The position numbers were made by a program, and so were the translations under genes. Positions 16,441 to 47,330 of a DNA stretch of 64,000 bases are shown piece after piece. Position 1 is the first letter of the stretch; each line of letters opens with the position of its first letter. The stretch is taken from the NCBI RefSeq assembly GCF_000006765.1, contig NC_002516.2; one strand, given 5' to 3'. Under the pieces are notes generated by a model that saw only the letters and a program-made list of their open reading frames with translations, searched no databases and was not told the origin of the DNA. This DNA is from Pseudomonas aeruginosa PAO1 (lineage in GTDB: Bacteria; Pseudomonadota; Gammaproteobacteria; Pseudomonadales; Pseudomonadaceae).

Positions 16441-16519
16441 TAGCGGCGTCGGGAGAACCCCAAGTCCCCGACGCTCCTTTGAAGACCATCGCCCTCCCCC
16501 CGCAGATGGTCTTTTTTTT
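16441..16519 (+). ncRNA. Candidate sRNA, sibling 1 (two hairpins with C-rich loops)
   Basis: GCGTCGGG[AGAACCCCAAGTC]CCCGACGC, then AAGACCATC[GCCCTCCCCCCGCA]GATGGTCTT plus T-run. Confidence 0.6.
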
Positions 16520-21920: not shown

Positions 21921-22265
21921 TCAGGCGAAGACGAAGTACTTGCGCACCGTCTCCACTACCTCCCAGGTACCACGCAGGCCCGGCTCGATGACGAACACGT
22001 CGCCCGCCCTCAGGTGCACCGGTTGCTCGCCTTCCGGGGTGATGATGCAGTAGCCGTCGAGGAAGTGGCAGAACTCCCAGCGTTCGTAGTTCACCTCCCA
22101 CTTGCCCGGCGTGCAGATCCAGGTGCCCATCAGCTTGCTGCCGTCCGCCGAGGCGTATGCGTTGAGGTTGACGGTATGCGGATCGCCGTCGATCCGCTTC
22201 CACTTGGTGGCGTCCAGCACGGGTACGGGACAGGTATCGCGCAGTACGGTGATGAAATCTGACAT
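21921..22265 (-). CDS. Cupin domain protein (DUF861/cupin_3-like)
   Basis: GTWICTPGKW, EFCHFLDG, AGDVFVIEPG, GTWEV..TVRK. Confidence 0.92.
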   Translation of the reverse strand: MSDFITVLRDTCPVPVLDATKWKRIDGDPHTVNLNAYASADGSKLMGTWICTPGKWEVNYERWEFCHFLDGYCIITPEGEQPVHLRAGDVFVIEPGLRGTWEVVETVRKYFVFA

Positions 22266-22586: not shown

Positions 22587-22746
22587 GACGAATCTCCTTC
22601 GGCGACTCCCCCGCAGTCTGCCGAAACCGCTCTGTCCCGGCGGTGACGCAAGAATGACGATTCGGACAGAATTGTTACGCCTGCCGCAAAACTTCATTCC
22701 ACTTTGTTAGCTGGCTAATCAAATTCCCCCTTGATATCGTCTTTTT

Positions 22747-22827
22747 CGCCAGATCCCCAAGGCCTGGCAAATGTCCCTTGTACAGGCCATTACCAACCCT
22801 CCCCCCGCTTGGTAATGGCCTTTTTTT
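22747..22827 (+). ncRNA. Candidate sRNA, sibling 2
   Basis: Extended -10 TGaTATCGT at 22732-22740; 5' hairpin loop ATCCCCAAGGC; AGGCCATTACCAA[CCCTCCCCCCGC]TTGGTAATGGCCT plus T-run. Confidence 0.65.
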
Positions 22828-22855
22828 CCCTTCTGCCGTAGTCCATGGAGATCGC

Positions 22856-23044
22856 ATGCCACGCATTGCCCTGGTCCTGGGTGTGCTGCTGGTCAGCGCC
22901 TGCGCACAGCCTGTCACGCCGGACTCGATAGTCGAGGAATCGTTTTCCCGCAGCGCCAGCGAACGCCAGCTGGAAGAGCTGAACCGCCAGGGCCTTCCCT
23001 ACGAGCAGTACCGGCTGCGCCGCCAGCGCATTCTTGGCCGCTGA
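22856..23044 (+). CDS. 62-aa lipoprotein
   Basis: GGAG SD; MPRIALVLGVLLVSAC lipobox. Confidence 0.75.
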   Translation: MPRIALVLGVLLVSACAQPVTPDSIVEESFSRSASERQLEELNRQGLPYEQYRLRRQRILGR

Positions 23045-23058
23045 TCCCGGCACCGCGC

Positions 23059-23268
23059 CTAGCGCTTCTTCGGCACCACCGCCCGCACCGCCTCGCAGAC
23101 GACCAGCCCGACCATCAGCGGGATCAGCAGCGGCAGGATCGACATCGAGAGGTTTTCCGCTCCCGAGCTGAGGAGAAACGGAAACTGGCTGAGGAAGGCG
23201 ACCATCGCCAGGCTGAGCAGGATCAGCAGGCCGTAGAGGCATGACGCCAATTTCAGAGCTTTTTCCAT
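23059..23268 (-). CDS. 69-aa two-TM membrane protein
   Basis: Two hydrophobic helices, basic C-terminus. Confidence 0.65.
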   Translation of the reverse strand: MEKALKLASCLYGLLILLSLAMVAFLSQFPFLLSSGAENLSMSILPLLIPLMVGLVVCEAVRAVVPKKR

Positions 23269-23598
23269 GACCGGGTAGAAAGTGAAGGATTCGGAAGAAA
23301 ATCTACCCGCCCCGCTCCCCCGGTATGGCGAGAAGCAAGATTTTTTCAGATTCGGGTGCCCCGAAAAGACGCGAACCCGACCGACCGATCACCCCTCCAT
23401 GCCCGTCGCGACAACCCGATCGGTCGGGTCCGGACTTGCAACATACCGCCGTGCCGATATCACGTCGCCTACCGGAACAAGGAGTTGTTCTTTTCGACGA
23501 ACGTCCTCGCCTCCCGCTATCGCCCGCCCATCGCGACCTCGTATGCTCGCCGGGCGATGCCTCATGCCAGCAACCCCCACCCACAAGGGAGCAACACG

Positions 23599-24294
23599 AT
23601 GAGCAACCTGCCTGCAATCATCCTGGTCCACGGCTTCTGGGGCGGCGCCGCCCACTGGAGCAAGGTCATTCTCGAACTGAAACGCCTCGGCCACGACAAC
23701 CTGCATGCCGTCGAACTACCGTTGACCTCGCTGGCGGACGATGCCGAGCGGACGCGCAAGATGATCGCGCAGCAACAGGGGCCGGTCCTGCTGGTGGGAC
23801 ACTCCTATGGCGGCGCGGTGATCACCGAGGCCGGCAACCAGCCGAATGTGGTCGGGCTGGTCTATATCGCCGCCTTCGCCCCCGACAGCGGCGAAAGTCC
23901 CGGTGGCATCACCCAGGAGCACTTGCCCCTGGCCGCAGCGAACCTGGCGACGGACAGCGATGGCTATCTCTGGGTGAAGGCGGACAGGTTCCACGAAAGC
24001 TTCTGCCAGGATCTCGCTGCGGACGAAGGGCTGGTCATGGGCATCACCCAGAAGGCTCCGCTGGCCAGCACTTTCGGCGATGCCATCGGCAGCCCGGCCT
24101 GGAAGAGCAAGCCCTCCTGGTACCAGATTTCCAGCGCCGATCGCATGATTGCGCCGGAGAACCAGGAGCGGATGGCCGCGCGGATCGCACCGAGGAAGAT
24201 CGTCACCCTCGATGCCAGCCACGCGTCACTGGCCTCGCGAGCGAAGGAAGTAGCGGCGCTGATCGACGAGGCCGCCGTGGCCACCGCCCACTAG
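23599..24294 (+). CDS. Alpha/beta hydrolase (family 6-like)
   Basis: AGGGAG SD; ILVHGFWG, GHSYGG, DASHASL. Confidence 0.9.
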   Translation: MSNLPAIILVHGFWGGAAHWSKVILELKRLGHDNLHAVELPLTSLADDAERTRKMIAQQQGPVLLVGHSYGGAVITEAGNQPNVVGLVYIAAFAPDSGESPGGITQEHLPLAAANLATDSDGYLWVKADRFHESFCQDLAADEGLVMGITQKAPLASTFGDAIGSPAWKSKPSWYQISSADRMIAPENQERMAARIAPRKIVTLDASHASLASRAKEVAALIDEAAVATAH

Positions 24295-24341
24295 CGCCGC
24301 GCAGGACGCGGCAGCAGGCCTGGCCTGCTGCCGCGGCGGGC

Positions 24342-25241
24342 TCAGAGGCCGAGGGCGGACAGGTCGAGGCGGCCGTCGGCCATGGGCGGACACCAGAAGT
24401 AGCTGCCGCTGATCGGCCGGGTGAAACGGAACAGGCCATCGAGCACCCCGTCTTCCACGCCGATCATCCGTAGCCACTGGACCTCGAAGGCCTCGAACGA
24501 GCGGCCGAAGGCGGCGAACAACAGCCCCGCGCGGTGCTCGTCGGACCAGGGCGCGCCGCGCCGCAGGAGGAACGCGGCGGGCTCGAAGCTTTCCTGCTCG
24601 GTGCGCTTGACGTGGGCGTAGGCCGGCGCGTCTTCCAGTTCTTCATCGTCGGACTTGCGGCGGCCGATGATGTTGTCCATCTCCTCGCCGGGGATCGCCT
24701 GCATCCGGTCGAAGTCATGCAGCCACTGCTGGACAGCAACGAAACTGCCGCCATCCAGGCCCGCACCGCGCCCGGAGACCAGCGCGGCTTCGAGCGCCGC
24801 ATCGCCCTTGGGGTTCTCGGTGCCGTCCTTGTAGCCGGACAGGTCGCGGTCCTCGCCGTAGAGGAACGCATCCACCGCGCCGGTCCGCTGGAAGGCCGGC
24901 GCCAGCGACCGTTCCAGCGCGTGCGAGCGCAGCGTCACCTCGCCGCGATCCTCGCCGCGCAGCCAGCACCACAGCGCGGAGGGCGTGGACGGCAGGTCGA
25001 TGCCGGGCGCGGCGAGCACCGGATAGTCCTTCATGCCCTCGACGGTCTTGCCGAGGCTGAGCATCAGCGAATGGCCGATACCCACCACCAGCTGGTAACC
25101 ATCGGTGGCCGCGGCCAGGCTGGCCAAGGTCGCGGCCACCTGCTCGGGTTGGGAAATGCTGAAAAACAGGTAGCGACCCACCACCGGAATCGGGGTGAGA
25201 ATGCCTGGCTGAGCCGCGCTCATGTTGCCTCCATCTATCAT
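24342..25241 (-). CDS. DyP-type peroxidase
   Basis: GYKDGTENP (GxxDG), IIGRRKSD, AHVKRT, LLRRGAPW. Confidence 0.93.
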   Translation of the reverse strand: MIDGGNMSAAQPGILTPIPVVGRYLFFSISQPEQVAATLASLAAATDGYQLVVGIGHSLMLSLGKTVEGMKDYPVLAAPGIDLPSTPSALWCWLRGEDRGEVTLRSHALERSLAPAFQRTGAVDAFLYGEDRDLSGYKDGTENPKGDAALEAALVSGRGAGLDGGSFVAVQQWLHDFDRMQAIPGEEMDNIIGRRKSDDEELEDAPAYAHVKRTEQESFEPAAFLLRRGAPWSDEHRAGLLFAAFGRSFEAFEVQWLRMIGVEDGVLDGLFRFTRPISGSYFWCPPMADGRLDLSALGL

Positions 25242-25428
25242 CAGGCCGTGCGCCGCTCGTGGCGATGCACCTTCGATCTCGTTCTGGTTCGAGCAATGCT
25301 CGGTTTCGGAGCGCAGCGGCGGGCGACGCCAAGCGAAGCGGCTCCGAAATACCCGCGCATCCTAAACCGGTGCAACGCCAGAGACCACTCGAAGACGAGG
25401 GAAAAGCGCGAAGTCGGACCTGCGTCGC

Positions 25429-25524
25429 TCAGAACTCCATCGGCATGAGACCGACCACCAGGCCGGCGACGGCAAGGGCAAACACCAGCAGGGCCTTGGC
25501 GAGTTCGAGATGATGGGCGTTCAT
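25429..25524 (-). CDS. 31-aa hydrophobic peptide (candidate)
   Basis: MNAHHLELAKALLVFALAVAGLVVGLMPMEF; AGGT about 7 nt upstream; lies in the TetR-DyP gap. Confidence 0.45.
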   Translation of the reverse strand: MNAHHLELAKALLVFALAVAGLVVGLMPMEF

Positions 25525-25582
25525 GGGCTTACCTGTCGGAGGGAAAGCCTGACGCTAGACGCCGAACATTGCAGTTGTGCAA

Positions 25583-26164
25583 TCAGTCCCGGTCCGCTTG
25601 CGGCGAAACCGCTCCGCTCGCCGAAAGCAGGCCCAGCGCATGCTCCAGCGCCGCATCCAGGACCTTGTCGCGCGCCACCTCGCTCGCCTGGGCACGCGCG
25701 AGAAGCACCGCGCCGACCGACAGGCAGGTGAGCACCCAGGCCCGGTTCTCGTCGCCCATCAGTTCGGCCAGCCGCCGTTGCCGCTGTTCCAGGGCGCGTT
25801 CGAAGGTTTCCCGCACCTCGGGCCCTGCCCGGCCCACCTCGGCGGCCAGCGCCGGAATCGGGCAGCCCATGTCGGCATGCTGCGCATGACCGCGACTGAG
25901 GTAGAGACGGGTGGCGCCGGCCAGTTGCTCCAGGCTGTCCAGCGGAAAGGCATCGTGCTGGGCGCTCAGCTCGCGCTGCAGGATCGCTTCGAGCAACTCC
26001 GCCTTGCTGGAGAATTGCGAGTAGAACGCCCCGGTGGTAAGACCAGCCGCCTTCATCAAGGTGTCCAGGCCGGTGCTGGCGAAGCCCTGGCGCTTCACCA
26101 GCGGAGCGGCCTTGCTCAACAGCAGGGCGCGGGTGGCCTGTTTCTGTTCCGGTTTGTAGCGCAT
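25583..26164 (-). CDS. TetR-family regulator
   Basis: GFASTGLDTLMKAAGLTTGAFYSQFSSKAEL HTH. Confidence 0.95.
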   Translation of the reverse strand: MRYKPEQKQATRALLLSKAAPLVKRQGFASTGLDTLMKAAGLTTGAFYSQFSSKAELLEAILQRELSAQHDAFPLDSLEQLAGATRLYLSRGHAQHADMGCPIPALAAEVGRAGPEVRETFERALEQRQRRLAELMGDENRAWVLTCLSVGAVLLARAQASEVARDKVLDAALEHALGLLSASGAVSPQADRD

Positions 26165-26206
26165 GCCGACTATCCGTTGGTTGGGGAGACGATGTCGTCA
26201 CATTGG

Positions 26207-26234
26207 ATAATGATCTTTATATAACGCTCGTTAT
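26207..26234. promoter_or_regulatory. Tandem palindromic operators between divergent TetR and ECH genes
   Basis: ATAATGATCTTTAT and ATAACGCTCGTTAT (ATAA-N6-TTAT twice). Confidence 0.55.
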
Positions 26235-26251
26235 CCAATGAGGAAGCCGCA

Positions 26252-27220
26252 ATGACTCTAGCACCGCGACACCTGCGCATAGAACAACGAGGACGCGTCC
26301 TGCAAGTCCTGCTCGACAATCCCCCGGCGAACTTCCTCACCACGGCGGTGATGCAGGAGCTGGCCGACCTGCTGGAAGACCTTGAGCAACGCCAGGACAT
26401 CGGCGCCGTCATCCTTTCCGGAGCGGCGGACGGGGTCTTCCTGACCCACTTCGACGTCGACGAGATCGAGCGCGCCGTCGCCCCCATCACCTTTTCCATG
26501 CCGGCCTGGCTGACACGCCTGCTGCTGGAAAGCGAAAGCCTCCTGCGCCACTTGCCTGGGGCGAGGAAGCTGCTGCGGCGCACCCTGCTGGCAGGCGTCG
26601 CCGACATGAACCTGTTCCATGAGGTCACCGCGCACATGCGCCGCATGGACAAGGTGTTCATCGCCGCGATCAACGGCCTGGCCCTGGGTGGCGGCTGCGA
26701 GCTGGCGCTGGCCTGCGACCTGCGCCTGATGGCCGAGGACGACCAAGTGGAACGCTTCCTCGGCCAGCCGGAAGTACTCATCGGCCTGATACCGGGAGGC
26801 GGCGGCACCCAGATGCTGGCGCGCAGCCTGGGCGTAGCCAGGGCCCTGGAGCTGTGCCTGGAAGGGCAACTGCTGGAGCCGCGCCAGGCCCTTGCGCTGG
26901 GCCTGGTCAACGGGCTGGCGCCAGCGGAGGAGCTACTGGAAGCCGCCGACGCGCTGGCGCAACGCCTGTCCCGGCGCTCACCGCAAGCGGTGCGCCTGAT
27001 CAAGCGTTCGATCTACCAGGCGGCTTCCCGCGACTGGACGGAGGGCATGGCCAGCGAAAAGGCCGGCTTCCTCTCCGCCGCCTCCCAGGGCAATACCCGC
27101 CGCGCCATGCGCGAATACATCGAACGGGTGCGCACCATCACCCGGGAAGAGCGCCCTTTCCGCCGTGCGGATTTTGACGACCTGACCGAAGGCAACGCCA
27201 TCGACATGGCCTACAGGTGA
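26252..27220 (+). CDS. Enoyl-CoA hydratase/isomerase family protein
   Basis: AINGLALGGGCELALACD, GQPEVLIGLIPGGGGTQ. Confidence 0.93.
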   Translation: MTLAPRHLRIEQRGRVLQVLLDNPPANFLTTAVMQELADLLEDLEQRQDIGAVILSGAADGVFLTHFDVDEIERAVAPITFSMPAWLTRLLLESESLLRHLPGARKLLRRTLLAGVADMNLFHEVTAHMRRMDKVFIAAINGLALGGGCELALACDLRLMAEDDQVERFLGQPEVLIGLIPGGGGTQMLARSLGVARALELCLEGQLLEPRQALALGLVNGLAPAEELLEAADALAQRLSRRSPQAVRLIKRSIYQAASRDWTEGMASEKAGFLSAASQGNTRRAMREYIERVRTITREERPFRRADFDDLTEGNAIDMAYR

Positions 27221-27708
27221 TCTGCATGACTGCCTCCCCTTCCCCGGTTTCCGCCACGCCTTGGCTGACCCTGAGCATTCGCCTGATGGCCGGCGGCTTC
27301 CTGCTGTTCTTCGGCCTGGCCCTGGCCACGCTGCTCCTGCGGCTCGACCAGTCGCTGCTCGACTCCGACGCCGGGCGCCTGCTGCTCCGCCTGGTTCGCT
27401 GGGGCGACCAGCAAGGCGGCGGACAGCACTATGAGCTGATGATCTCGACGATCTACCTGGTCTGGGGCGCATTCCTCTGGCGCGCCGCCAGCCAGCCCTT
27501 CCGCCACCGGCTGTTTATCGACTTCACCGTGGCGGCCAATGCCGCGCACTTCGGCCTGATGTTCCTGCAGGGACTGTTGATGCCCGGCGAACACATCCAC
27601 CTGGCCGGCGATGTCCTGCTGGGCTGGGCCTCGCTGCTGCCGCTGATGCTGTTCTGGATACCGCAACGCAAGCGGGCAGCCCCTTCGCTCGCCGTCGAGC
27701 GGAAGTGA
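27217..27708 (+). CDS. Four-TM membrane protein
   Basis: GTGA overlap with ECH; hydrophobic segments. Confidence 0.8.
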   Translation: MICMTASPSPVSATPWLTLSIRLMAGGFLLFFGLALATLLLRLDQSLLDSDAGRLLLRLVRWGDQQGGGQHYELMISTIYLVWGAFLWRAASQPFRHRLFIDFTVAANAAHFGLMFLQGLLMPGEHIHLAGDVLLGWASLLPLMLFWIPQRKRAAPSLAVERK

Positions 27709-27733
27709 CGACAGTGGAACGGCCCCCAAAGGG

Positions 27734-27753
27734 GCCTAGCAGTTCGAACAGGC
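27734..27753 (+). promoter_or_regulatory. las/rhl (lux-type) box upstream of sRNA sibling 3
   Basis: GCCTAGCAGTTCGAACAGGC fits CT-N12-AG; -35 TTGATG at 27759-64, -10 TATGCT at 27781-86. Confidence 0.55.
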
Positions 27754-27792
27754 TCCTCTTGATGCCGTTGCGGACTGGCCTATGCTCACGGT

Positions 27793-27850
27793 GTGTGCGA
27801 ACCCCAAGGGTATTTCCCGACCAGCTCCCCCGCGGTCGGGATTTTTTTTT
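27793..27850 (+). ncRNA. Candidate sRNA, sibling 3
   Basis: GAACCCCAAG motif; TCCCGACC[AGCTCCCCCGC]GGTCGGGA plus T9. Confidence 0.65.
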
Positions 27851-27859
27851 GCCTGTCGC

Positions 27860-28270
27860 TCAGCGCTTCGGGTCGAAGGGCGAATAGCCCCGCCGGCGCA
27901 GGCTCGCCAGGGGCGCGAACAGCGGCTCCGGCAGATCGGCCCAATCGAACCAGGCCCAGCCGTCGCACTTGTCCGGCTCCATGAGGCGCGCCTCGGCATC
28001 CTCCGCGCAACCGGCCAGGATGAACGCGGTGAGGTAGTGGCGCCCCTCGAAGACGTCATTGCTGAACGGGCCGTGGCGCAGTTCGCTCAGCGCCAGGTCG
28101 GTCTCTTCCAGGGCTTCGCGCAGGGCGCAGTCCTCCACCGCCTCGCCGAACTCGAGATGGCCGCCGGGCGCCGACCAGCAGCCAGCGCCATGACTGCCCT
28201 TGCGGCGCCCCAGCAACACCTTGCCGTCCCGCAAGATCAGGACGCCCACGCCTACCTGCGGTGCCGGCAT
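27860..28270 (-). CDS. Nudix hydrolase
   Basis: GGHLEFGEAVEDCALREALEETDL Nudix box. Confidence 0.95.
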   Translation of the reverse strand: MPAPQVGVGVLILRDGKVLLGRRKGSHGAGCWSAPGGHLEFGEAVEDCALREALEETDLALSELRHGPFSNDVFEGRHYLTAFILAGCAEDAEARLMEPDKCDGWAWFDWADLPEPLFAPLASLRRRGYSPFDPKR

Positions 28271-28291
28271 CGTCGTACTCCTGCTTCGGGA

Positions 28292-29071
28292 TCAGAGATG
28301 GAGCGTACCGCTCATGTACAACGCCGCCTTGCCGGAGATGACCACCCGCTCGCCGCGCACGTCGCATTCCAGGCGCCCCTTGCGCGCCCCGCCCTGCTCG
28401 GCGCTCAGCCGGGTCTTGCCCAGGCGCTGCGCCCAGTACGGCGCCAGGGAGGTATGCGCGGAGCCGGTCACCGGGTCTTCGTTGACGCCGACGTTGGGCC
28501 CGAACCAGCGCGAGACGAAATCGAAGCGCTGGCTGCGCGCGGTCACCGCCACCCCGCGGCACGGCAAGCCCTTCAGCCGGGCGAAGTCAGGCGCCAGGGC
28601 GGCGATCGTCTTTTCGTCGTCGACCACCACGAGGTAATCGTCGGTCTTCAGCACTTCCGCCTCGGCAATACCCAGCGCCTCCAGCAGTCCGTCCGGTGTC
28701 GCGCAAGGCTCCGGACGCTTGGCCGGGAAGTCCATCGCCAGCGAGTCGCCCTCGCGCCGCACGCTCAGCTCACCGCTACGGGTAGCGAAACGCAGTACCG
28801 GGGAAGCGTCGTCGAGCTTGTGGATCAGTACCCAGGCCGTCGCCAGGGTCGCATGACCGCACAGGTCCACCTCGACCTGCGGCGTGAACCAGCGCAATCG
28901 ATAGTCGCCGTCGCGGCCGACGACAAAGGCGGTTTCCGAAAGATTGTTCTCTTCCGCGATGGCCTGCAGGCGCTCGTCGTCCAGCCAGGCATCGAGGGGG
29001 CAGACCGCCGCCGGATTGCCCTGGAAGGGACTGTCGGCGAATGCGTCTACCTGGAAGATCGTCAGTTCCAT
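28292..29071 (-). CDS. PhzF-family isomerase/epimerase
   Basis: QVDAF...GNPAAV, NLSETAF, EVDLCGHATLA, EDPVTGSAH. Confidence 0.95.
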   Translation of the reverse strand: MELTIFQVDAFADSPFQGNPAAVCPLDAWLDDERLQAIAEENNLSETAFVVGRDGDYRLRWFTPQVEVDLCGHATLATAWVLIHKLDDASPVLRFATRSGELSVRREGDSLAMDFPAKRPEPCATPDGLLEALGIAEAEVLKTDDYLVVVDDEKTIAALAPDFARLKGLPCRGVAVTARSQRFDFVSRWFGPNVGVNEDPVTGSAHTSLAPYWAQRLGKTRLSAEQGGARKGRLECDVRGERVVISGKAALYMSGTLHL

Positions 29072-29157
29072 GTTCCGGACTCCTGTATCGATGGGCTGCG
29101 CACCTTAGCAGCCGGACCGAGACCAGGACAATGCCGCGCCCCGCGCAGGCGCCTCGC

Positions 29158-29424
29158 TCAGATCTGACGGATATCCAGCAGCGCCCAGACCTGGTAACCC
29201 TGGCGCTTGGCTTCCTTCTCCGCTTCCAGTTGCGCGGTGACCTTGCTGATGGAGCGCGAGCGATGTTCGAAACGCAGCGGCAATCCCGCCCCGCCCTTGC
29301 GCACGCTCAGTTCGACGATGGTGTAGCGGACCGGCTGGCTGGCCTCGGTCCGGACCTTTTTCGGTCGCGTTTCGGCAAGGCCCAGCGCCTTGCGCATCTG
29401 TTCTTCAGAGTAGATTTCCTGCAC
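29158..29424 (-). CDS. Small hypothetical protein (start uncertain: GTG 29424 or upstream to 29454)
   Basis: QEIYSEEQMRKALGL...RFEHRSRSISKVTAQLEAEKEAKRQGY. Confidence 0.6.
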   Translation of the reverse strand: MQEIYSEEQMRKALGLAETRPKKVRTEASQPVRYTIVELSVRKGGAGLPLRFEHRSRSISKVTAQLEAEKEAKRQGYQVWALLDIRQI

Positions 29425-29525
29425 GCATTCACCCAGATTGAATAAAACCCGCAAATCCTATTGGTTCGCGACCCCACTTGCCAGGATAGTCGGCGAAGCG
29501 GGTCACACATCGACGCGAAAATCGC

Positions 29526-29545
29526 GCCTACCAGATCCGGCAGCT
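29526..29545 (+). promoter_or_regulatory. las/rhl box upstream of sRNA sibling 4
   Basis: GCCTACCAGATCCGGCAGCT fits CT-N12-AG; -10 TAAGCT at 29567-72 centres the box near -43. Confidence 0.65.
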
Positions 29546-29578
29546 TCATCGAAACCGCCGCCGACATAAGCTGTGGGC

Positions 29579-29633
29579 GCTGTACATCCCTGGATCCTTT
29601 CCCGGCCTGCTCCACGCGGCCGGGATTTTTTTT
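29579..29633 (+). ncRNA. Candidate sRNA, sibling 4
   Basis: TCCCGGCC[TGCTCCACGC]GGCCGGGA plus T8; near copy of the sibling 3 terminator with a compensatory base change. Confidence 0.65.
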
Positions 29634-29728
29634 GCCCTCTTCACCCTTGCGCCGACTGCGGACGCCAGGCTGGCCTTCAGCCTGTCCGGCAGCTATACCG
29701 AAAGTCTCCACCGTGATCAGGATCCAGT

Positions 29729-30754
29729 ATGCTCGCCTGCCCCCTCCCTCCCGACGAAGCCCTGCGCCAGCAGGCCCTGGACGACATGGCGCTGGTCGAC
29801 ACCCCCGCCGAACACTACCTGGACGCCCTGGTGGAACTGGCGCGGGAAACCTTCGGGGTGAAGACCGTGCTGATCAGTCTGATCGACCACGACCGCCAAT
29901 GGTTCAAGGCCCGTATCGGCCTGGATGCCGAACAGACGCCGCGCGACCTGTCCTTCTGCGGCCACGCCATCCTGGCCAGCGAACCGCTGATGGTGACGGA
30001 CGCCTCCAGGGATCCGCGTTTTCACGACAATCCGCTGGTCACCGGGCCGCCCTTCATCCGCTTCTACGCCGGCGAGCCCCTGCACGCCAGCAATGGCCAG
30101 GCCATCGGCACACTCTGCCTGATCGACCCGAGCCCGCGGCTGCTGGATCTCCGGGAAGGACGCCAGCTCAATCGACTGTCGATCCTGGCCGAAGGATATC
30201 TCCAGCTACGCAGCCTCACCGAGCACACCCGCTTCCTGCGCCAGGAGATCGACCGGGAGCAGCGCAAGTCACTGCTCGACCCCCTCACCCAATTGTGGAA
30301 CCGGGCCGGCTTCCACGCGCTGCACCAGCATGAACTGGAGTTGGCGCGGGCCAGCGACCAGCGCATCGGCATCATCTACAGCGATATCGACCATTTCAAA
30401 CGTATCAACGACACCCTGGGGCACCGGGCCGGCGACAGCGTCCTCCGCGAGGCGGCTTCGCGACTGCGCGCGGCGCTGCGGCCGGAAGATCTCCTGGCGC
30501 GTTTCGGCGGCGAGGAGTTCGTGGCGATGGTCCGGGTCCGCGAGACCACGGAACTGACCATGATCGCCAATCGCATCCGCGAACTGATGGAAGCGACCCC
30601 GATCGACTGTGCCGGCACGTCCGTGCCAGTGACCATCAGTGCCGGCTGTACCCTGGCCGGCAGCGGCGAAGAACCGGAACGGGCACTCGCCCGGGCGGAT
30701 GCCGCGCTGTACGACGCCAAGCGTGCCGGACGCAACCGGGTGGTCAGCGTCTGA
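29729..30754 (+). CDS. GAF-GGDEF diguanylate cyclase
   Basis: N-terminal GAF (SFCGHAI, IRFYAG); DPLTQLWNR, DIDHFKRINDTLGHRAGD, ARFGGEEF. Confidence 0.95.
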   Translation: MLACPLPPDEALRQQALDDMALVDTPAEHYLDALVELARETFGVKTVLISLIDHDRQWFKARIGLDAEQTPRDLSFCGHAILASEPLMVTDASRDPRFHDNPLVTGPPFIRFYAGEPLHASNGQAIGTLCLIDPSPRLLDLREGRQLNRLSILAEGYLQLRSLTEHTRFLRQEIDREQRKSLLDPLTQLWNRAGFHALHQHELELARASDQRIGIIYSDIDHFKRINDTLGHRAGDSVLREAASRLRAALRPEDLLARFGGEEFVAMVRVRETTELTMIANRIRELMEATPIDCAGTSVPVTISAGCTLAGSGEEPERALARADAALYDAKRAGRNRVVSV

Positions 30755-33449: not shown

Positions 33450-33526
33450 TGGTAGGCACGATTGGATTCGAACCAACGACCCCCACCATGTCAAGGTGGT
33501 GCTCTAACCAACTGAGCTACGTGCCT
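33450..33526 (-). tRNA. tRNA-Val(GAC)
   Basis: AGGCACGTAGCTCAGTTGGTTAGAGC-ACCACC-TTGACAT-GGTGG...GGTTCGAATCC...CCTACCA; 77 nt with CCA. Confidence 0.98.
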
Positions 33527-44411: not shown

Positions 44412-46007
44412 TCAGGTACGGAAGCGGCCGAGCACCACGCGCAAGCCAGCCATGTGCTCCTTGACCCTCTGGTTGGCCGAAAGCACTGCGGCGGTCCCTT
44501 CGTGGGCCTGCTCGGAGAGTCCGGAGACGTTGGTGATGTTGCGGTCGATGTCCTGGGCCACCTGGCTCTGTTCCTCGGCGGCGGTCGCGATCTGCTGGTT
44601 GAGGCCGTCCAGTTCTTCCACCGTGGCGACGATGCGCCCCAGCGCCTGGGCCGCGCTGTCGGCCTCGACGAGGTTGCTCTGGGCATGGCTGGCGCTACCG
44701 CGCATGGCGGCGACCGCATCGTTGGCGCCGTCCTGCAACTGCTCGATCAACCCCTGGATCTCCTGGGTCGACTGCTGGGTACGGTTGGCCAGCGAACGCA
44801 CTTCGTCCGCCACCACGGCGAAGCCGCGCCCGGCCTCCCCGGCCCGCGCCGCCTCGATGGCGGCATTGAGCGCCAGCAGGTTGGTCTGCTCGGCGATGCT
44901 GCTGATCACCGTAAGCACCTGGCCGACACTGCCGGCATGCTGGTGCAGGGTGTTCAGCGCCAGGGCGGTCTGTTCCAGTTCCTCCGCCAACGCACCGGTC
45001 TGGCTGCTGGCGTGCTCCACCAGACGCCGTCCCTCGTGGGCCAGGGCCGCGGCGTCGCGCGTGGAGTGCGCCGCATGGTTGGCGTGGCGGGCGACCTCGG
45101 CCACGGTGGCGCTCATCTCGTTCATCGCGGTGGCCACCTGGTCCAGGTCCTGGTGCTGGCGCGCCACCTGGTCGCCGGCGCCGAGCGCCTGCTCCAGGGC
45201 CTCGGCCACGTCCTTGTCGGTCTCTGCCGCGCTGCGCTTGACGTTCGCCAGCAAACCGCTGACGTCCTGGCGCATCCGCTCGTAGCCAGCGACGATGCGG
45301 CCGATCTCGTTGTCCGCATGGCCCGCCGCCAGGGCATGGGTGAAGTTCGCCGCGCCGACCTCGGTCAGCGCCACTTCCAACCCACGCAACTGCCGCATCA
45401 GCGGCGCCAGGCCGAACTGCCGGCCGAGCACCACCAGCACCAGGATCGCCAACAGGCAACCGAAGGCGATCCACATCTGGGTGTGCTGGACACTGTCGGC
45501 GCGCGCGCTCATCAGCGAGACCAGGTTGTTCAGCTCGCCCAACAGCTCGGTGGAATACTGCGAGAAGCCGCGCAGATCGACCTGGCTGGCAGGCTGTGCC
45601 ACCTGGTCGAGCATGGCCCGGTAGCGGCCCCAGATCTGCGCCACCTTCTGCCGCTGGGCGGCGATCTCCGGCGCGCCCATCCGGCTCACGTTGCGCTCGG
45701 CATTGCCCGCATCCAGATCGGCGGCCGAGCGTTCGTACTGGGCGATGGTCGCGGCCAGGGCCTTTGGGTCGCCGGCGCCGAGTCGCAATTGCAGCGCCTC
45801 GCGGGCCATCTTCTGGCTGAGCATGCGCTGCGCGCCGGCCACGTTGATGGTTTCCGGCGAGATCGACATGCTCAGGTACAACGCCACCGAGGCGCAGGCG
45901 GCCAGGCCGAACATCAGTGCATAGGACAGCAGGAACTGGGCGTTCAGGGTCTTCAACCCGAGCCCCCGTAGAATCCGATCGAACACCCTGGCGACGCTTT
46001 CGTTCAT
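44412..46007 (-). CDS. Methyl-accepting chemotaxis protein with a PilJ/NarX-like sensor region
   Basis: [14 protein letters not shown]; [34 protein letters not shown]. Confidence 0.95.
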
Positions 46008-46250
46008 TGGTTTTTCCCCACTGGACTACAGAAACCGATAACCACCCCATCGGCCCGTCGCGCCTGGGCTTGAATCGGCACTTCGCCGACTCCATCCCCG
46101 AGCGCCTCCCTCTCCAGGGCGTGGCCCCCGGCGGACAAGGCCTGAAGACAGTTTGCCGCTGCGGCATCGGGACGCGCCCTGTAAACTCTGGCAGGTACCC
46201 GGCACGCCGCGCCGGAGACGTCATGGAACCCAACCCGCAAGGACGCCCGC

Positions 46251-47330
46251 GTGATCCCCGTCGCCCCTCTTCCCCTGATCGTCCCGCTCATCTACCTGTC
46301 GTCGTTCGTCGCCGGCATCTGGCTGCTGGTCTGGCTATCGCTCCTGGCCTTCAGCCCGCGCGCGCGCCAGCGCTTGCGCCGCCGCTGGCCGAGCCGCGGC
46401 CTGCTGATGCTGCTCCTGCTGATCCCGTTGGGACTGCGCGCCTGGCTGGAGATCGGTCTCTGGCAGTACGAGCGCGAACGTGCACGCGAGGAAGCCGCGC
46501 ACAGCGCCGTGCTCGAGCGCCCTACCCGCCTCGGAGGCATCGAGATGCCTGCCGGCACCCGGCTGAAGCTGGAACTCAAGCACCAGCCGGAAAGCTTCCG
46601 AGAAGCCGAATTCCCCACCCCGGTGACGATCCGCGGCGTCGCCACCCGCCACCTGCAACGCTGGCTGCAGAGCGAGCAGGACAACCCGCAGGACCCATGG
46701 AAAACCACCGGCGTCCATCCCACTTCGCTGCGCCTGCGTGGCGAGGGAGTCGCCGAGATCGAAGGCTGGCGTTGCGACGCCAGCCAGGAAATCGCCTTCG
46801 CCAGCGAGCGCGACGGGCGTCCCGCCGCCTTCGAAGGCTGTAGCCTGGCGATCGGCAACCGCGCCGACGACATCGACTTCCCCGCCGGTGCGCGATTGTT
46901 CGCCAGCGATGGCATGGTCTACACCGACGGCTACCGCGACGCCGAGCGCTGGCGGGTAATGCCGGAAACCGGGCAACGGGTGTCGGTGCGCGGCATCGCG
47001 CTGAGCGGCGGCGCCCTGGCCTTCGACCGCGACCGCCGCCTGTACGGCCTCGGCGGTACGGTCCTCGCCGAGGCCTTGCAACTGGGCGCCTGGCACTACC
47101 CGGCAGGCACCGAGGTCAGCCTTTCACCCCGCGCCGCCTGGCGCGCGCAACATCCGCACGCCTGGCTGTTCAGTCCTACCCGCGAAGCCGCTTCGCATGC
47201 CTCCGGCGAGCGCCTGGAACACGGCGTCTCGCTGTTGCAGACGCTGGACGGCCAGGAACTTGAGCGCCTCGACAACCGCGCGGCAGGGGTCATCGACTTC
47301 ATCGAACTGGAGATCGGCGACGAACGCTGA
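46251..47330 (+). CDS. Membrane-anchored hypothetical protein
   Basis: Two N-terminal TM segments, beta-rich remainder. Confidence 0.8.
   Translation: MIPVAPLPLIVPLIYLSSFVAGIWLLVWLSLLAFSPRARQRLRRRWPSRGLLMLLLLIPLGLRAWLEIGLWQYERERAREEAAHSAVLERPTRLGGIEMPAGTRLKLELKHQPESFREAEFPTPVTIRGVATRHLQRWLQSEQDNPQDPWKTTGVHPTSLRLRGEGVAEIEGWRCDASQEIAFASERDGRPAAFEGCSLAIGNRADDIDFPAGARLFASDGMVYTDGYRDAERWRVMPETGQRVSVRGIALSGGALAFDRDRRLYGLGGTVLAEALQLGAWHYPAGTEVSLSPRAAWRAQHPHAWLFSPTREAASHASGERLEHGVSLLQTLDGQELERLDNRAAGVIDFIELEIGDER

Follow-up and report, generated by a model that had tools for sequence, protein, structure and literature searches.

Two short Hfq-binding RNAs of Pseudomonas aeruginosa PAO1, encoded between the genes PA2768 and PA2771, have been catalogued previously and form the subject of this analysis. 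Ferrara et al. (2012) listed SPA0116, an RNA of ca. 50 nt on the + strand and antisense to PA2769, as well as SPA0097, likewise on the + strand, in the 2771/2770 gap. Law et al. (2019) described three Hfq-associated small RNAs (sRNAs) obtained by RNA immunoprecipitation sequencing (RIP-seq), among them AS2779, 'antisense of PA2769', and IGR2780, 'between PA2770 and PA2771'. For both, these authors reported Northern bands, start sites from tobacco acid pyrophosphatase (TAP)-dependent rapid amplification of cDNA 5′ ends (5′ RACE), sigma-70 promoters (with a single start site in the case of IGR2780) and, in electrophoretic mobility shift assays (EMSA), Hfq binding with a dissociation constant (Kd) below 150 nM.

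We analysed a stretch of 64,000 nt of the PAO1 chromosome (NC_002516.2; G+C content 65%), referred to as the window, which corresponds to the PA2754–PA2790 region according to gene content and published coordinates. A preliminary description, made from the letters of the window, had proposed a family of four elements, siblings 1 to 4, and had interpreted siblings 3 and 4 as a pair of quorum-sensing-induced sRNAs with covarying paralogous terminators, each situated behind a las/rhl-type box. Sibling 3, in the PA2768/PA2769 gap, is SPA0116/AS2779 and sibling 4, in the PA2770/PA2771 gap, is SPA0097/IGR2780, both already catalogued as Hfq-binding sRNAs; position, strand, size and primer sequences all agree, without any sequence difference. 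The quantitative PCR (qPCR) primers printed in Keivanpour et al. (2026) find exact counterparts in the window, AS2779-F and AS2779-R at 27810–27829 and 27870–27888, IGR2780-F and IGR2780-R at 29579–29599 and 29605–29619, and give products of 79 and 41 bp, respectively, as published. The presence of an sRNA at each locus, surmised beforehand, is thereby borne out by the independently transcribed Hfq-binding RNAs of Law et al. (2019). Both RNAs and the response of SPA0116 to acyl-homoserine lactones (AHLs) already being in the literature, the original proposal is largely not new.

Altogether, we consider it probable that the two loci encode paralogous, independently transcribed Hfq-binding sRNAs of ca. 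55 nt, with the anatomy and the quorum-sensing wiring as proposed. What can be added are the paralogy of SPA0116 and IGR2780 and the link between a published RhlR site and IGR2780, which are small additions to known RNAs; neither alters the understanding of quorum-controlled sRNAs.

Anatomy of SPA0116 and IGR2780

The two RNAs share a simple architecture (Table 1). Each would run from a sigma-70-type −10 hexamer, TATGCT in SPA0116 and TAAGCT in IGR2780, to a Rho-independent terminator, which upon folding forms an 8+2 bp stem in both cases, with a C-rich loop UCCCCC and a U9 tail in SPA0116, and with a loop UCCAC and a U8 tail in IGR2780. The terminators, the CT-N12-AG boxes and a single A-U to G-C exchange in the stem were all found where the preliminary description had placed them. 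Neither terminator was detected by a consensus terminator scan, both loops being longer than 8 nt.

SPA0116 indeed lies between convergent genes, whose stops at 27708 (+) and 27860 (−) leave a gap of 151 nt, and read-through of its terminator yields a longer RNA that is antisense to PA2769, the NUDIX gene. Its 5′ end can be anchored on strain PA14, for which the part of the differential RNA sequencing (dRNA-seq) data of Wurtzel et al. (2012) relayed in PMC4180829 gives a primary start of an RNA antisense to PA14_28290. This start, as given there, maps to position 27794 of the window, 8 nt past TATGCT.

No Rfam family reached its gathering threshold over siblings 3 and 4, either in a search of the whole window at threshold or in a search of the region at E values up to 10. 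The models that appear below threshold, NsiR1 (RF02399; 20–23 bits over both siblings, at best 22.8, compared with a gathering score of 39) and anti-hemB (RF02837; 18.5–18.8 bits over both, compared with 49.5), owe their scores to the terminator and to a short stretch rich in C, and the siblings are members of neither family.

Paralogy and selection

SPA0116 and IGR2780 align with a z-score of 14.5, and none of 500 dinucleotide shuffles aligned as well. The signal stems entirely from a 37-nt terminator block with 32 identities. The distance from the −10 hexamer to the TTTCCCG block shared by both is 26 nt in SPA0116 and 25 nt in IGR2780, which carries the paralogy from the −10 hexamer to the terminator. 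The claimed paralogy is accordingly firm for the 3′-terminal 40 nt and for this spacing, but it finds no support in the promoters; the two boxes are no more similar to one another than expected by chance.

The restriction of clear likeness to the 3′ 40 nt, together with differing promoter parts, would also be expected if a mobile or repeated terminator cassette, instead of a pair of paralogous sRNA genes, had been copied. We regard this as extremely improbable. A covariance model of the sibling 3/4 pair has exactly two matches in the window, of 83 and 81 bits, and detects no other member there, the window being devoid of any further copy of the terminator block. Moreover, when 241 million metagenome records were scanned with three stem positions free on each side, no copy types other than these two were retrieved, and they invariably occurred together, 1.6–1.8 kb apart. 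The −10-to-terminator spacing is conserved, and no inverted or direct repeats were seen flanking the two siblings. As to the spacing of the pair, the distance between siblings 3 and 4 is ca. 210 bp shorter in one metagenome contig (L088) than in the window.

An RNAalifold consensus of the two copies together with the orthologues from P. paraeruginosa contains 10 base pairs, nine invariant and one with a compensatory change from A-U to G-C. No further stem variant was present in nine metagenome contigs, whose sequences are invariant, or in P. paraeruginosa. The term 'covarying' used in the preliminary description thus applies to one compensatory pair, but this is a single event and not a series; it is consistent with a selected hairpin structure and does not amount to strong covariation.

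The proposed extension of the family to siblings 1 and 2 did not hold. A search with the covariance model of the pair gave sibling 1 a score of 7.9 bits (E = 1.8) and did not list sibling 2; pairwise z-scores of siblings 1 and 2 against siblings 3 and 4 range from 0.2 to 2.4, and the shared sequence amounts to two short motifs, AACCCCAAG and CUCCCCC, the latter in the terminator loop. Sibling 1 is SPA0038 (16484–16519, +) in the PA2754/ecotin gap; its 3′ end (PAO1 3116590) is very abundant in published term-seq (base mean 18,278) and AHL-unresponsive (1.03-fold). Sibling 2 (22785–22827), in the PA2762/63 gap, is barely expressed in term-seq (base mean 9).

Between P. aeruginosa and P. paraeruginosa one substitution is found in transcribed SPA0116 and none in IGR2780, which is 100% identical, whereas spacers and flanks carry many changes or cannot be aligned; this contrast indicates purifying selection on the RNAs themselves. 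Among 80 species with a relative of PA2770, collected by a synteny search with the PhzF protein as query and one genome per species (80 loci), P. paraeruginosa is the only one that possesses the RNAs. In this species siblings 2 and 3 are separated by ca. 3 kb rather than 5 kb (contig L001, 5217–8337, compared with window 22660–27850), so that ca. 2 kb are missing or replaced there. The publications consulted on SPA0116 and IGR2780 (Ferrara et al. 2012; Law et al. 2019; Thomason et al. 2019) neither describe them as paralogues nor tie them to the RhlR site PA14 2444398 discussed below. Recognising SPA0116 and IGR2780 as paralogues that are restricted to the P. aeruginosa/P. paraeruginosa lineage appears to be new.

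The RhlR site upstream of IGR2780

For comparisons with known operators we used the lasB site and the RhlR sequences printed in Table 1 of Keegan et al. (2023), and built an RhlR weight matrix from 25 RhlR motifs published there, which derive from chromatin immunoprecipitation sequencing (ChIP-seq). A CT-N12-AG core, stated in PMC2018727 for las/rhl (lux-type) boxes, is present in the 20-mers of both siblings, which is a weak sign when taken alone given 416 such sites in the window.

Read as its reverse complement, the IGR2780 box agrees in every letter with AAGCTGCCGGATCTGGTAGGC, which is the motif of the RhlR ChIP-seq site PA14 2444398. The signal at this site amounts to 885 in the wild type and falls to 8.4 in the rhlR deletion strain, to 321 in the pqsE and to 167 in the rhlI deletion strain (Keegan et al. 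2023), and the site appears again in a data set of 2026. RhlR occupancy, which had been named as a check of the preliminary description, is thus documented by a published peak on exactly that motif, lost upon deletion of rhlR. The proposed 15/20 match to the lasB site is confirmed against the sequence of Keegan et al. and is reached by only three of the 416 window sites; on the RhlR matrix the box attains 13.6 bits, the third-highest score in the window and level with the weakest site used in the matrix.

In class II geometry a lux-type box is centred about 40–44 bp upstream of the start site. The IGR2780 box fits this arrangement, its centre lying at −43.5 if the start is placed 7 nt after TAAGCT, in agreement with the predicted value of about −43. 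From this position RhlR would drive transcription of the sRNA.

Keegan et al. (2023) assign the site to PA14_28250/28260, noting an earlier RhlR regulon hit ('Mukherjee'), and do not mention sRNAs. In line with this assignment, the site at 29526–29546 might serve the divergent 98-codon open reading frame (ORF) PA14_28260, its place upstream of IGR2780 being incidental; the box comes close to a palindrome (12 of 16 positions) and is located 74–89 bp upstream of the annotated start of this ORF. However, the annotated neighbours of the site change merely 0.9- and 1.2-fold in the rhlR deletion strain, the latter value belonging to PA14_28260 (113 vs 91, q = 1), and this ORF has no family match and begins with TTG. 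These data, and the canonical class II distance from the putative IGR2780 start, make an operator for PA14_28260 quite unlikely. Because neither neighbouring coding gene responds to rhlR, IGR2780 is the most likely transcript served by the site, and activation of IGR2780 by RhlR would be the most economical reading. An 'orphan' RhlR ChIP-seq site thereby gains a plausible target, the IGR2780 promoter at class II distance, an assignment that appears to be new.

Quorum-sensing control of SPA0116

The case of SPA0116 is reversed in that its response to the signal is published. Thomason et al. (2019) applied term-seq to a PAO1 strain deleted for lasI and rhlI, in the presence and in the absence of both AHLs, and found the SPA0116 3′ end at PAO1 3127925 (+) raised 28.6-fold with AHLs (adjusted p = 3.8e-75); their differential list is headed by this 3′ end as the most significant site genome-wide. 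AHL quorum sensing accordingly switches SPA0116 on, as these published data show. Because RhlR is absent from the SPA0116 promoter in PA14, control by LasR appears to be the likeliest route, or else an indirect one, and the conserved CT-N12-AG box near −50 would be the operator. Of the quorum-sensing-induced pair originally postulated, AHL induction of SPA0116 and RhlR occupancy at IGR2780 are both on record; AHL induction of IGR2780 itself is a prediction.

Several observations weigh against a quorum-regulated pair of paralogues as outlined above. The promoter parts of the two loci resemble each other no more than expected by chance (201 of 1000 shuffles as good). In P. paraeruginosa, two central changes lower the score of the IGR2780 box from 13.6 to 8.8 bits. 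Among the sites in the accessible part of the term-seq list no 3′ end coincides with the IGR2780 terminator (ca. PAO1 3129705); weak sites at PAO1 3127718 and 3133219, flanking the expected position, are listed in that part. Over-expression of AS2779 or IGR2780 left antibiotic minimal inhibitory concentrations (MICs) unaltered (Law et al. 2019). Finally, the SPA0116 box reaches no more than 4.2 bits with the RhlR matrix, the 76th rank in the window, is centred near −50 from the start at 27794, ca. 6 bp farther upstream than, and thus out of register with, class II lux-type boxes, and is not covered by any peak of the complete PA14 list from RhlR ChIP-seq. This list (S1 Table) comprises 168 enriched regions, 40 of them accepted as RhlR-bound, and has nothing between 2444398 and 2477339. 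The preliminary description had itself called this box, then placed near −49, the less canonical one, and its proposed 13/20 match to the lasB site holds in the reverse orientation but drops to 11/20 in the forward one.

These properties of the SPA0116 box, and a density of CT-N12-AG sites in the window of 6.5 per kb, leave room for another explanation, namely that the box is a chance occurrence, that the AHL response of SPA0116 is indirect via a quorum-controlled regulator or sigma factor, and that the terminator mainly ends the PA2767–PA2768 operon. We judge this combination possible, though somewhat unlikely. The box is identical in P. paraeruginosa, where it stands right at the start of alignable sequence while the DNA just upstream cannot be aligned, and a 13/20 match to the lasB site is attained by only 11 of the 416 CT-N12-AG sites in the window. 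It is also improbable that such a box should occur by chance 30 bp upstream of the −10 hexamer of the most strongly AHL-induced 3′ end of the genome. A role as operon terminator is at variance with the mapped primary start site within the PA2768/PA2769 gap and with the very low expression of PA2768 in PA14 (ca. 8 units). The box is a candidate operator of SPA0116.

IGR2780 and the downstream gene

The terminator of IGR2780 ends 95 nt ahead of the ATG of PA2771, a GAF-GGDEF diguanylate cyclase gene. The 9-nt segment CUGGAUCCU (29590–29598) in the unpaired 5′ part of IGR2780 is a perfect 9-bp complement of AGGAUCCAG (29719–29727), the Shine-Dalgarno region of PA2771, and both segments are paired with each other in the minimum-energy fold of 29577–29760. 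Such 9-mers number only five in 128 kb of both strands, and eight of the nine base pairs are retained in P. paraeruginosa. We based these statements on counts of exact complements; energy statistics of the RNAduplex type were discarded, as the structures contained many long internal loops and the controls came out as low as the test. The putative pairing between CUGGAUCCU and the ribosome-binding site of PA2771 is to be taken as a lead, not as a result.

The short distance and the predicted intramolecular pairing also allow IGR2780 to be viewed as the 5′ leader or premature-termination product of PA2771, comparable to RhlS upstream of rhlI, a precedent for a leader-derived RNA in P. aeruginosa; RhlR would then drive the PA2771 promoter and CUGGAUCCU would mask the ribosome-binding site in cis. 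This proposal is unlikely in the light of strain comparisons. In PA14-type contigs (L082, L089) a class B acid phosphatase gene takes the place of PA2771, with box and RNA unchanged, and the strain-variable junction lies directly after the U-run of IGR2780 (window 29634 onward; L082 1–1540; L089). The acid phosphatase gene explains the PA14 annotation 'secreted acid phosphatase', and it does not respond to rhlR, rhlI or pqsE deletions (62 vs 67). The Northern blots, in addition, revealed a discrete small Hfq-binding IGR2780 species. The persistence of RNA and box beside different downstream genes speaks for IGR2780 as a unit of its own.

Coordinates and further features of the window

Table 1. 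Positions of the two sRNA loci and their neighbours in the 64-kb window
Feature	Position	Strand	Basis or remark
PA2768, DUF6632-like gene	27217–27708	+	upstream of SPA0116 (sibling 3), convergent with PA2769
CT-N12-AG box of SPA0116, 20-mer GCCTAGCAGTTCGAACAGGC	27734–27753; core 27736–27751	.	sequence
−10 hexamer TATGCT of SPA0116	27781–27786	+	26 nt ahead of terminator block
sRNA SPA0116/AS2779, short form, ca. 55 nt	27794–27850	+	primers, term-seq 3′ end, start site
Rho-independent terminator of SPA0116, TTTCCCGACCAGCTCCCCCGCGGTCGGGAT(9)	27813–27850	+	fold; covariance model 82.9 bits
PA2769, NUDIX hydrolase gene	27860–28270	−	3′ end faces SPA0116
PA2770, PhzF-family gene	28292–29071	−	window gene
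98-codon ORF, PA14_28260 in PA14, TTG start	29158–29454	−	divergent from IGR2780 (sibling 4)
CT-N12-AG 20-mer of IGR2780, GCCTACCAGATCCGGCAGCT	29526–29545; core 29528–29543	.	sequence
RhlR-bound lux-type box of IGR2780	29526–29546	.	reverse complement of ChIP-seq motif AAGCTGCCGGATCTGGTAGGC
Putative −10 hexamer TAAGCT of IGR2780	29567–29572	+	25 nt ahead of terminator block; kept in P. paraeruginosa
sRNA SPA0097/IGR2780, ca. 55 nt, predicted 5′ end	29579–29633	+	published primers; Ferrara et al. 2012
CUGGAUCCU, unpaired 5′ part of IGR2780	29590–29598	+	hypothetical complement of PA2771 ribosome-binding site
Rho-independent terminator of IGR2780, TTTCCCGGCCTGCTCCACGCGGCCGGGAT(8)	29598–29633	+	fold; covariance model 81 bits
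PA2771 Shine-Dalgarno region, AGGAUCCAG	29719–29727	+	ends 1 nt ahead of ATG at 29729
PA2771, GAF-GGDEF diguanylate cyclase gene	29729–30754	+	downstream of IGR2780, PAO1-type strains only

The best match to the RhlR matrix in the window is TACCTGCCAGAGTTTACAGGG (46177–46197, −; 20.4 bits), situated between a divergent pair consisting of a methyl-accepting chemotaxis gene (44412–46007, −) and an unassigned 359-codon ORF (46251–47330, +). The AHL-induced 3′ end of SPA0080 (PAO1 3147657, ca. window 47581) lies downstream of this site, and the PA14 RhlR ChIP list has no peak there. The second-best match is GAACTCCCAGCGTTCGTAGTT (22071–22091, +; 14.6 bits).

Rfam further identified a Pseudomonas sRNA P13 (6919–6994, −; 105 bits) and a tRNA (33453–33526, −; 71 bits). 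A 12-nt identity between SPA0116 and the coding strand of a Dyp-peroxidase gene (24805–24816) was judged compatible with chance. The genes PA2768–PA2771 are not mentioned in the supplements of Letizia 2022 and Huang 2019.

Mode of action and comparison with known systems

The C-rich apical loop and the tail of 8–9 U residues constitute a 3′ module typical of Hfq binding. In this scenario both RNAs would act by Hfq-assisted base pairing of their unpaired C-rich stretches with G-rich, Shine-Dalgarno-like regions of messenger RNAs (mRNAs), and we infer interactions with the ribosome-binding regions of the targets as their mode of action. Within the window there is one candidate pairing, the 9-bp complementarity to the PA2771 ribosome-binding site already described.

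A further potential partner is SPA0079 (23291–23440, −; loop 23314–23322), a published AHL-dependent sRNA binding Hfq and RsmA/N. Its G-rich loop CGGGGGAGC is perfectly complementary to the SPA0116 loop GCUCCCCCG, and on the opposite strand the segment 23315–23346 (+) looks like a decayed sibling-type terminator with a C-rich loop followed by T6. Judged from these sequences, the C-rich-loop RNAs of the PA2754–PA2771 region and the quorum-induced, G-rich-loop SPA0079 could form an interacting set of RNAs. The small ORF PA14_28360 (23056–23265, −) follows closely after SPA0079 in the same orientation; deletion of rhlR lowers its expression from 77 to 13 (q = 1.7e-25) in the absence of a nearby RhlR ChIP peak, and SPA0079 may share a transcript with it.

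In a combined scheme, RhlR would switch on IGR2780, whose CUGGAUCCU would pair with the ribosome-binding site of PA2771 in PAO1-type strains, and/or the C-rich-loop RNAs would interact with SPA0079. We attach little probability to this scheme. If true, the chain from RhlR via IGR2780 to PA2771 would be a direct link from quorum sensing to cyclic di-GMP mediated by an sRNA.

RhlS and SPA0079 resemble the two paralogues in being AHL-induced (which among the paralogues is shown for SPA0116), in possessing Rho-independent terminators and in having a las/rhl-type box upstream. Neither of them bears any sequence likeness to SPA0116 and IGR2780. RhlS, moreover, is derived from the 5′ untranslated region (UTR) of rhlI, and SPA0079 differs in being encoded on the opposite strand, in its greater length, in the G-rich terminator loop and in its additional binding of RsmA/N.

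Outside Pseudomonas, LhrC1–5 of Listeria are multicopy sibling sRNAs with unpaired C-rich motifs, also in the terminator loop, and represent the type that pairs with Shine-Dalgarno sequences. The common feature is the clustering of short paralogous RNAs with C-rich loops. The differences are equally evident: there is no relation in sequence, the phylum and the regulator are others, pairing of the Pseudomonas RNAs is only predicted, and the IGR2780 loop UCCAC is weakly C-rich.

Qrr1–5 of Vibrio are transcribed from sigma-54/LuxO promoters and made at low cell density; no Rfam Qrr match was obtained in the window. Like SPA0116 and IGR2780, they are paralogous Hfq-dependent sRNAs wired into quorum sensing. 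In contrast to the Qrr RNAs, however, the two Pseudomonas paralogues have sigma-70-type promoters combined with a LuxR-type activator box, and their expression would rise with the signal.

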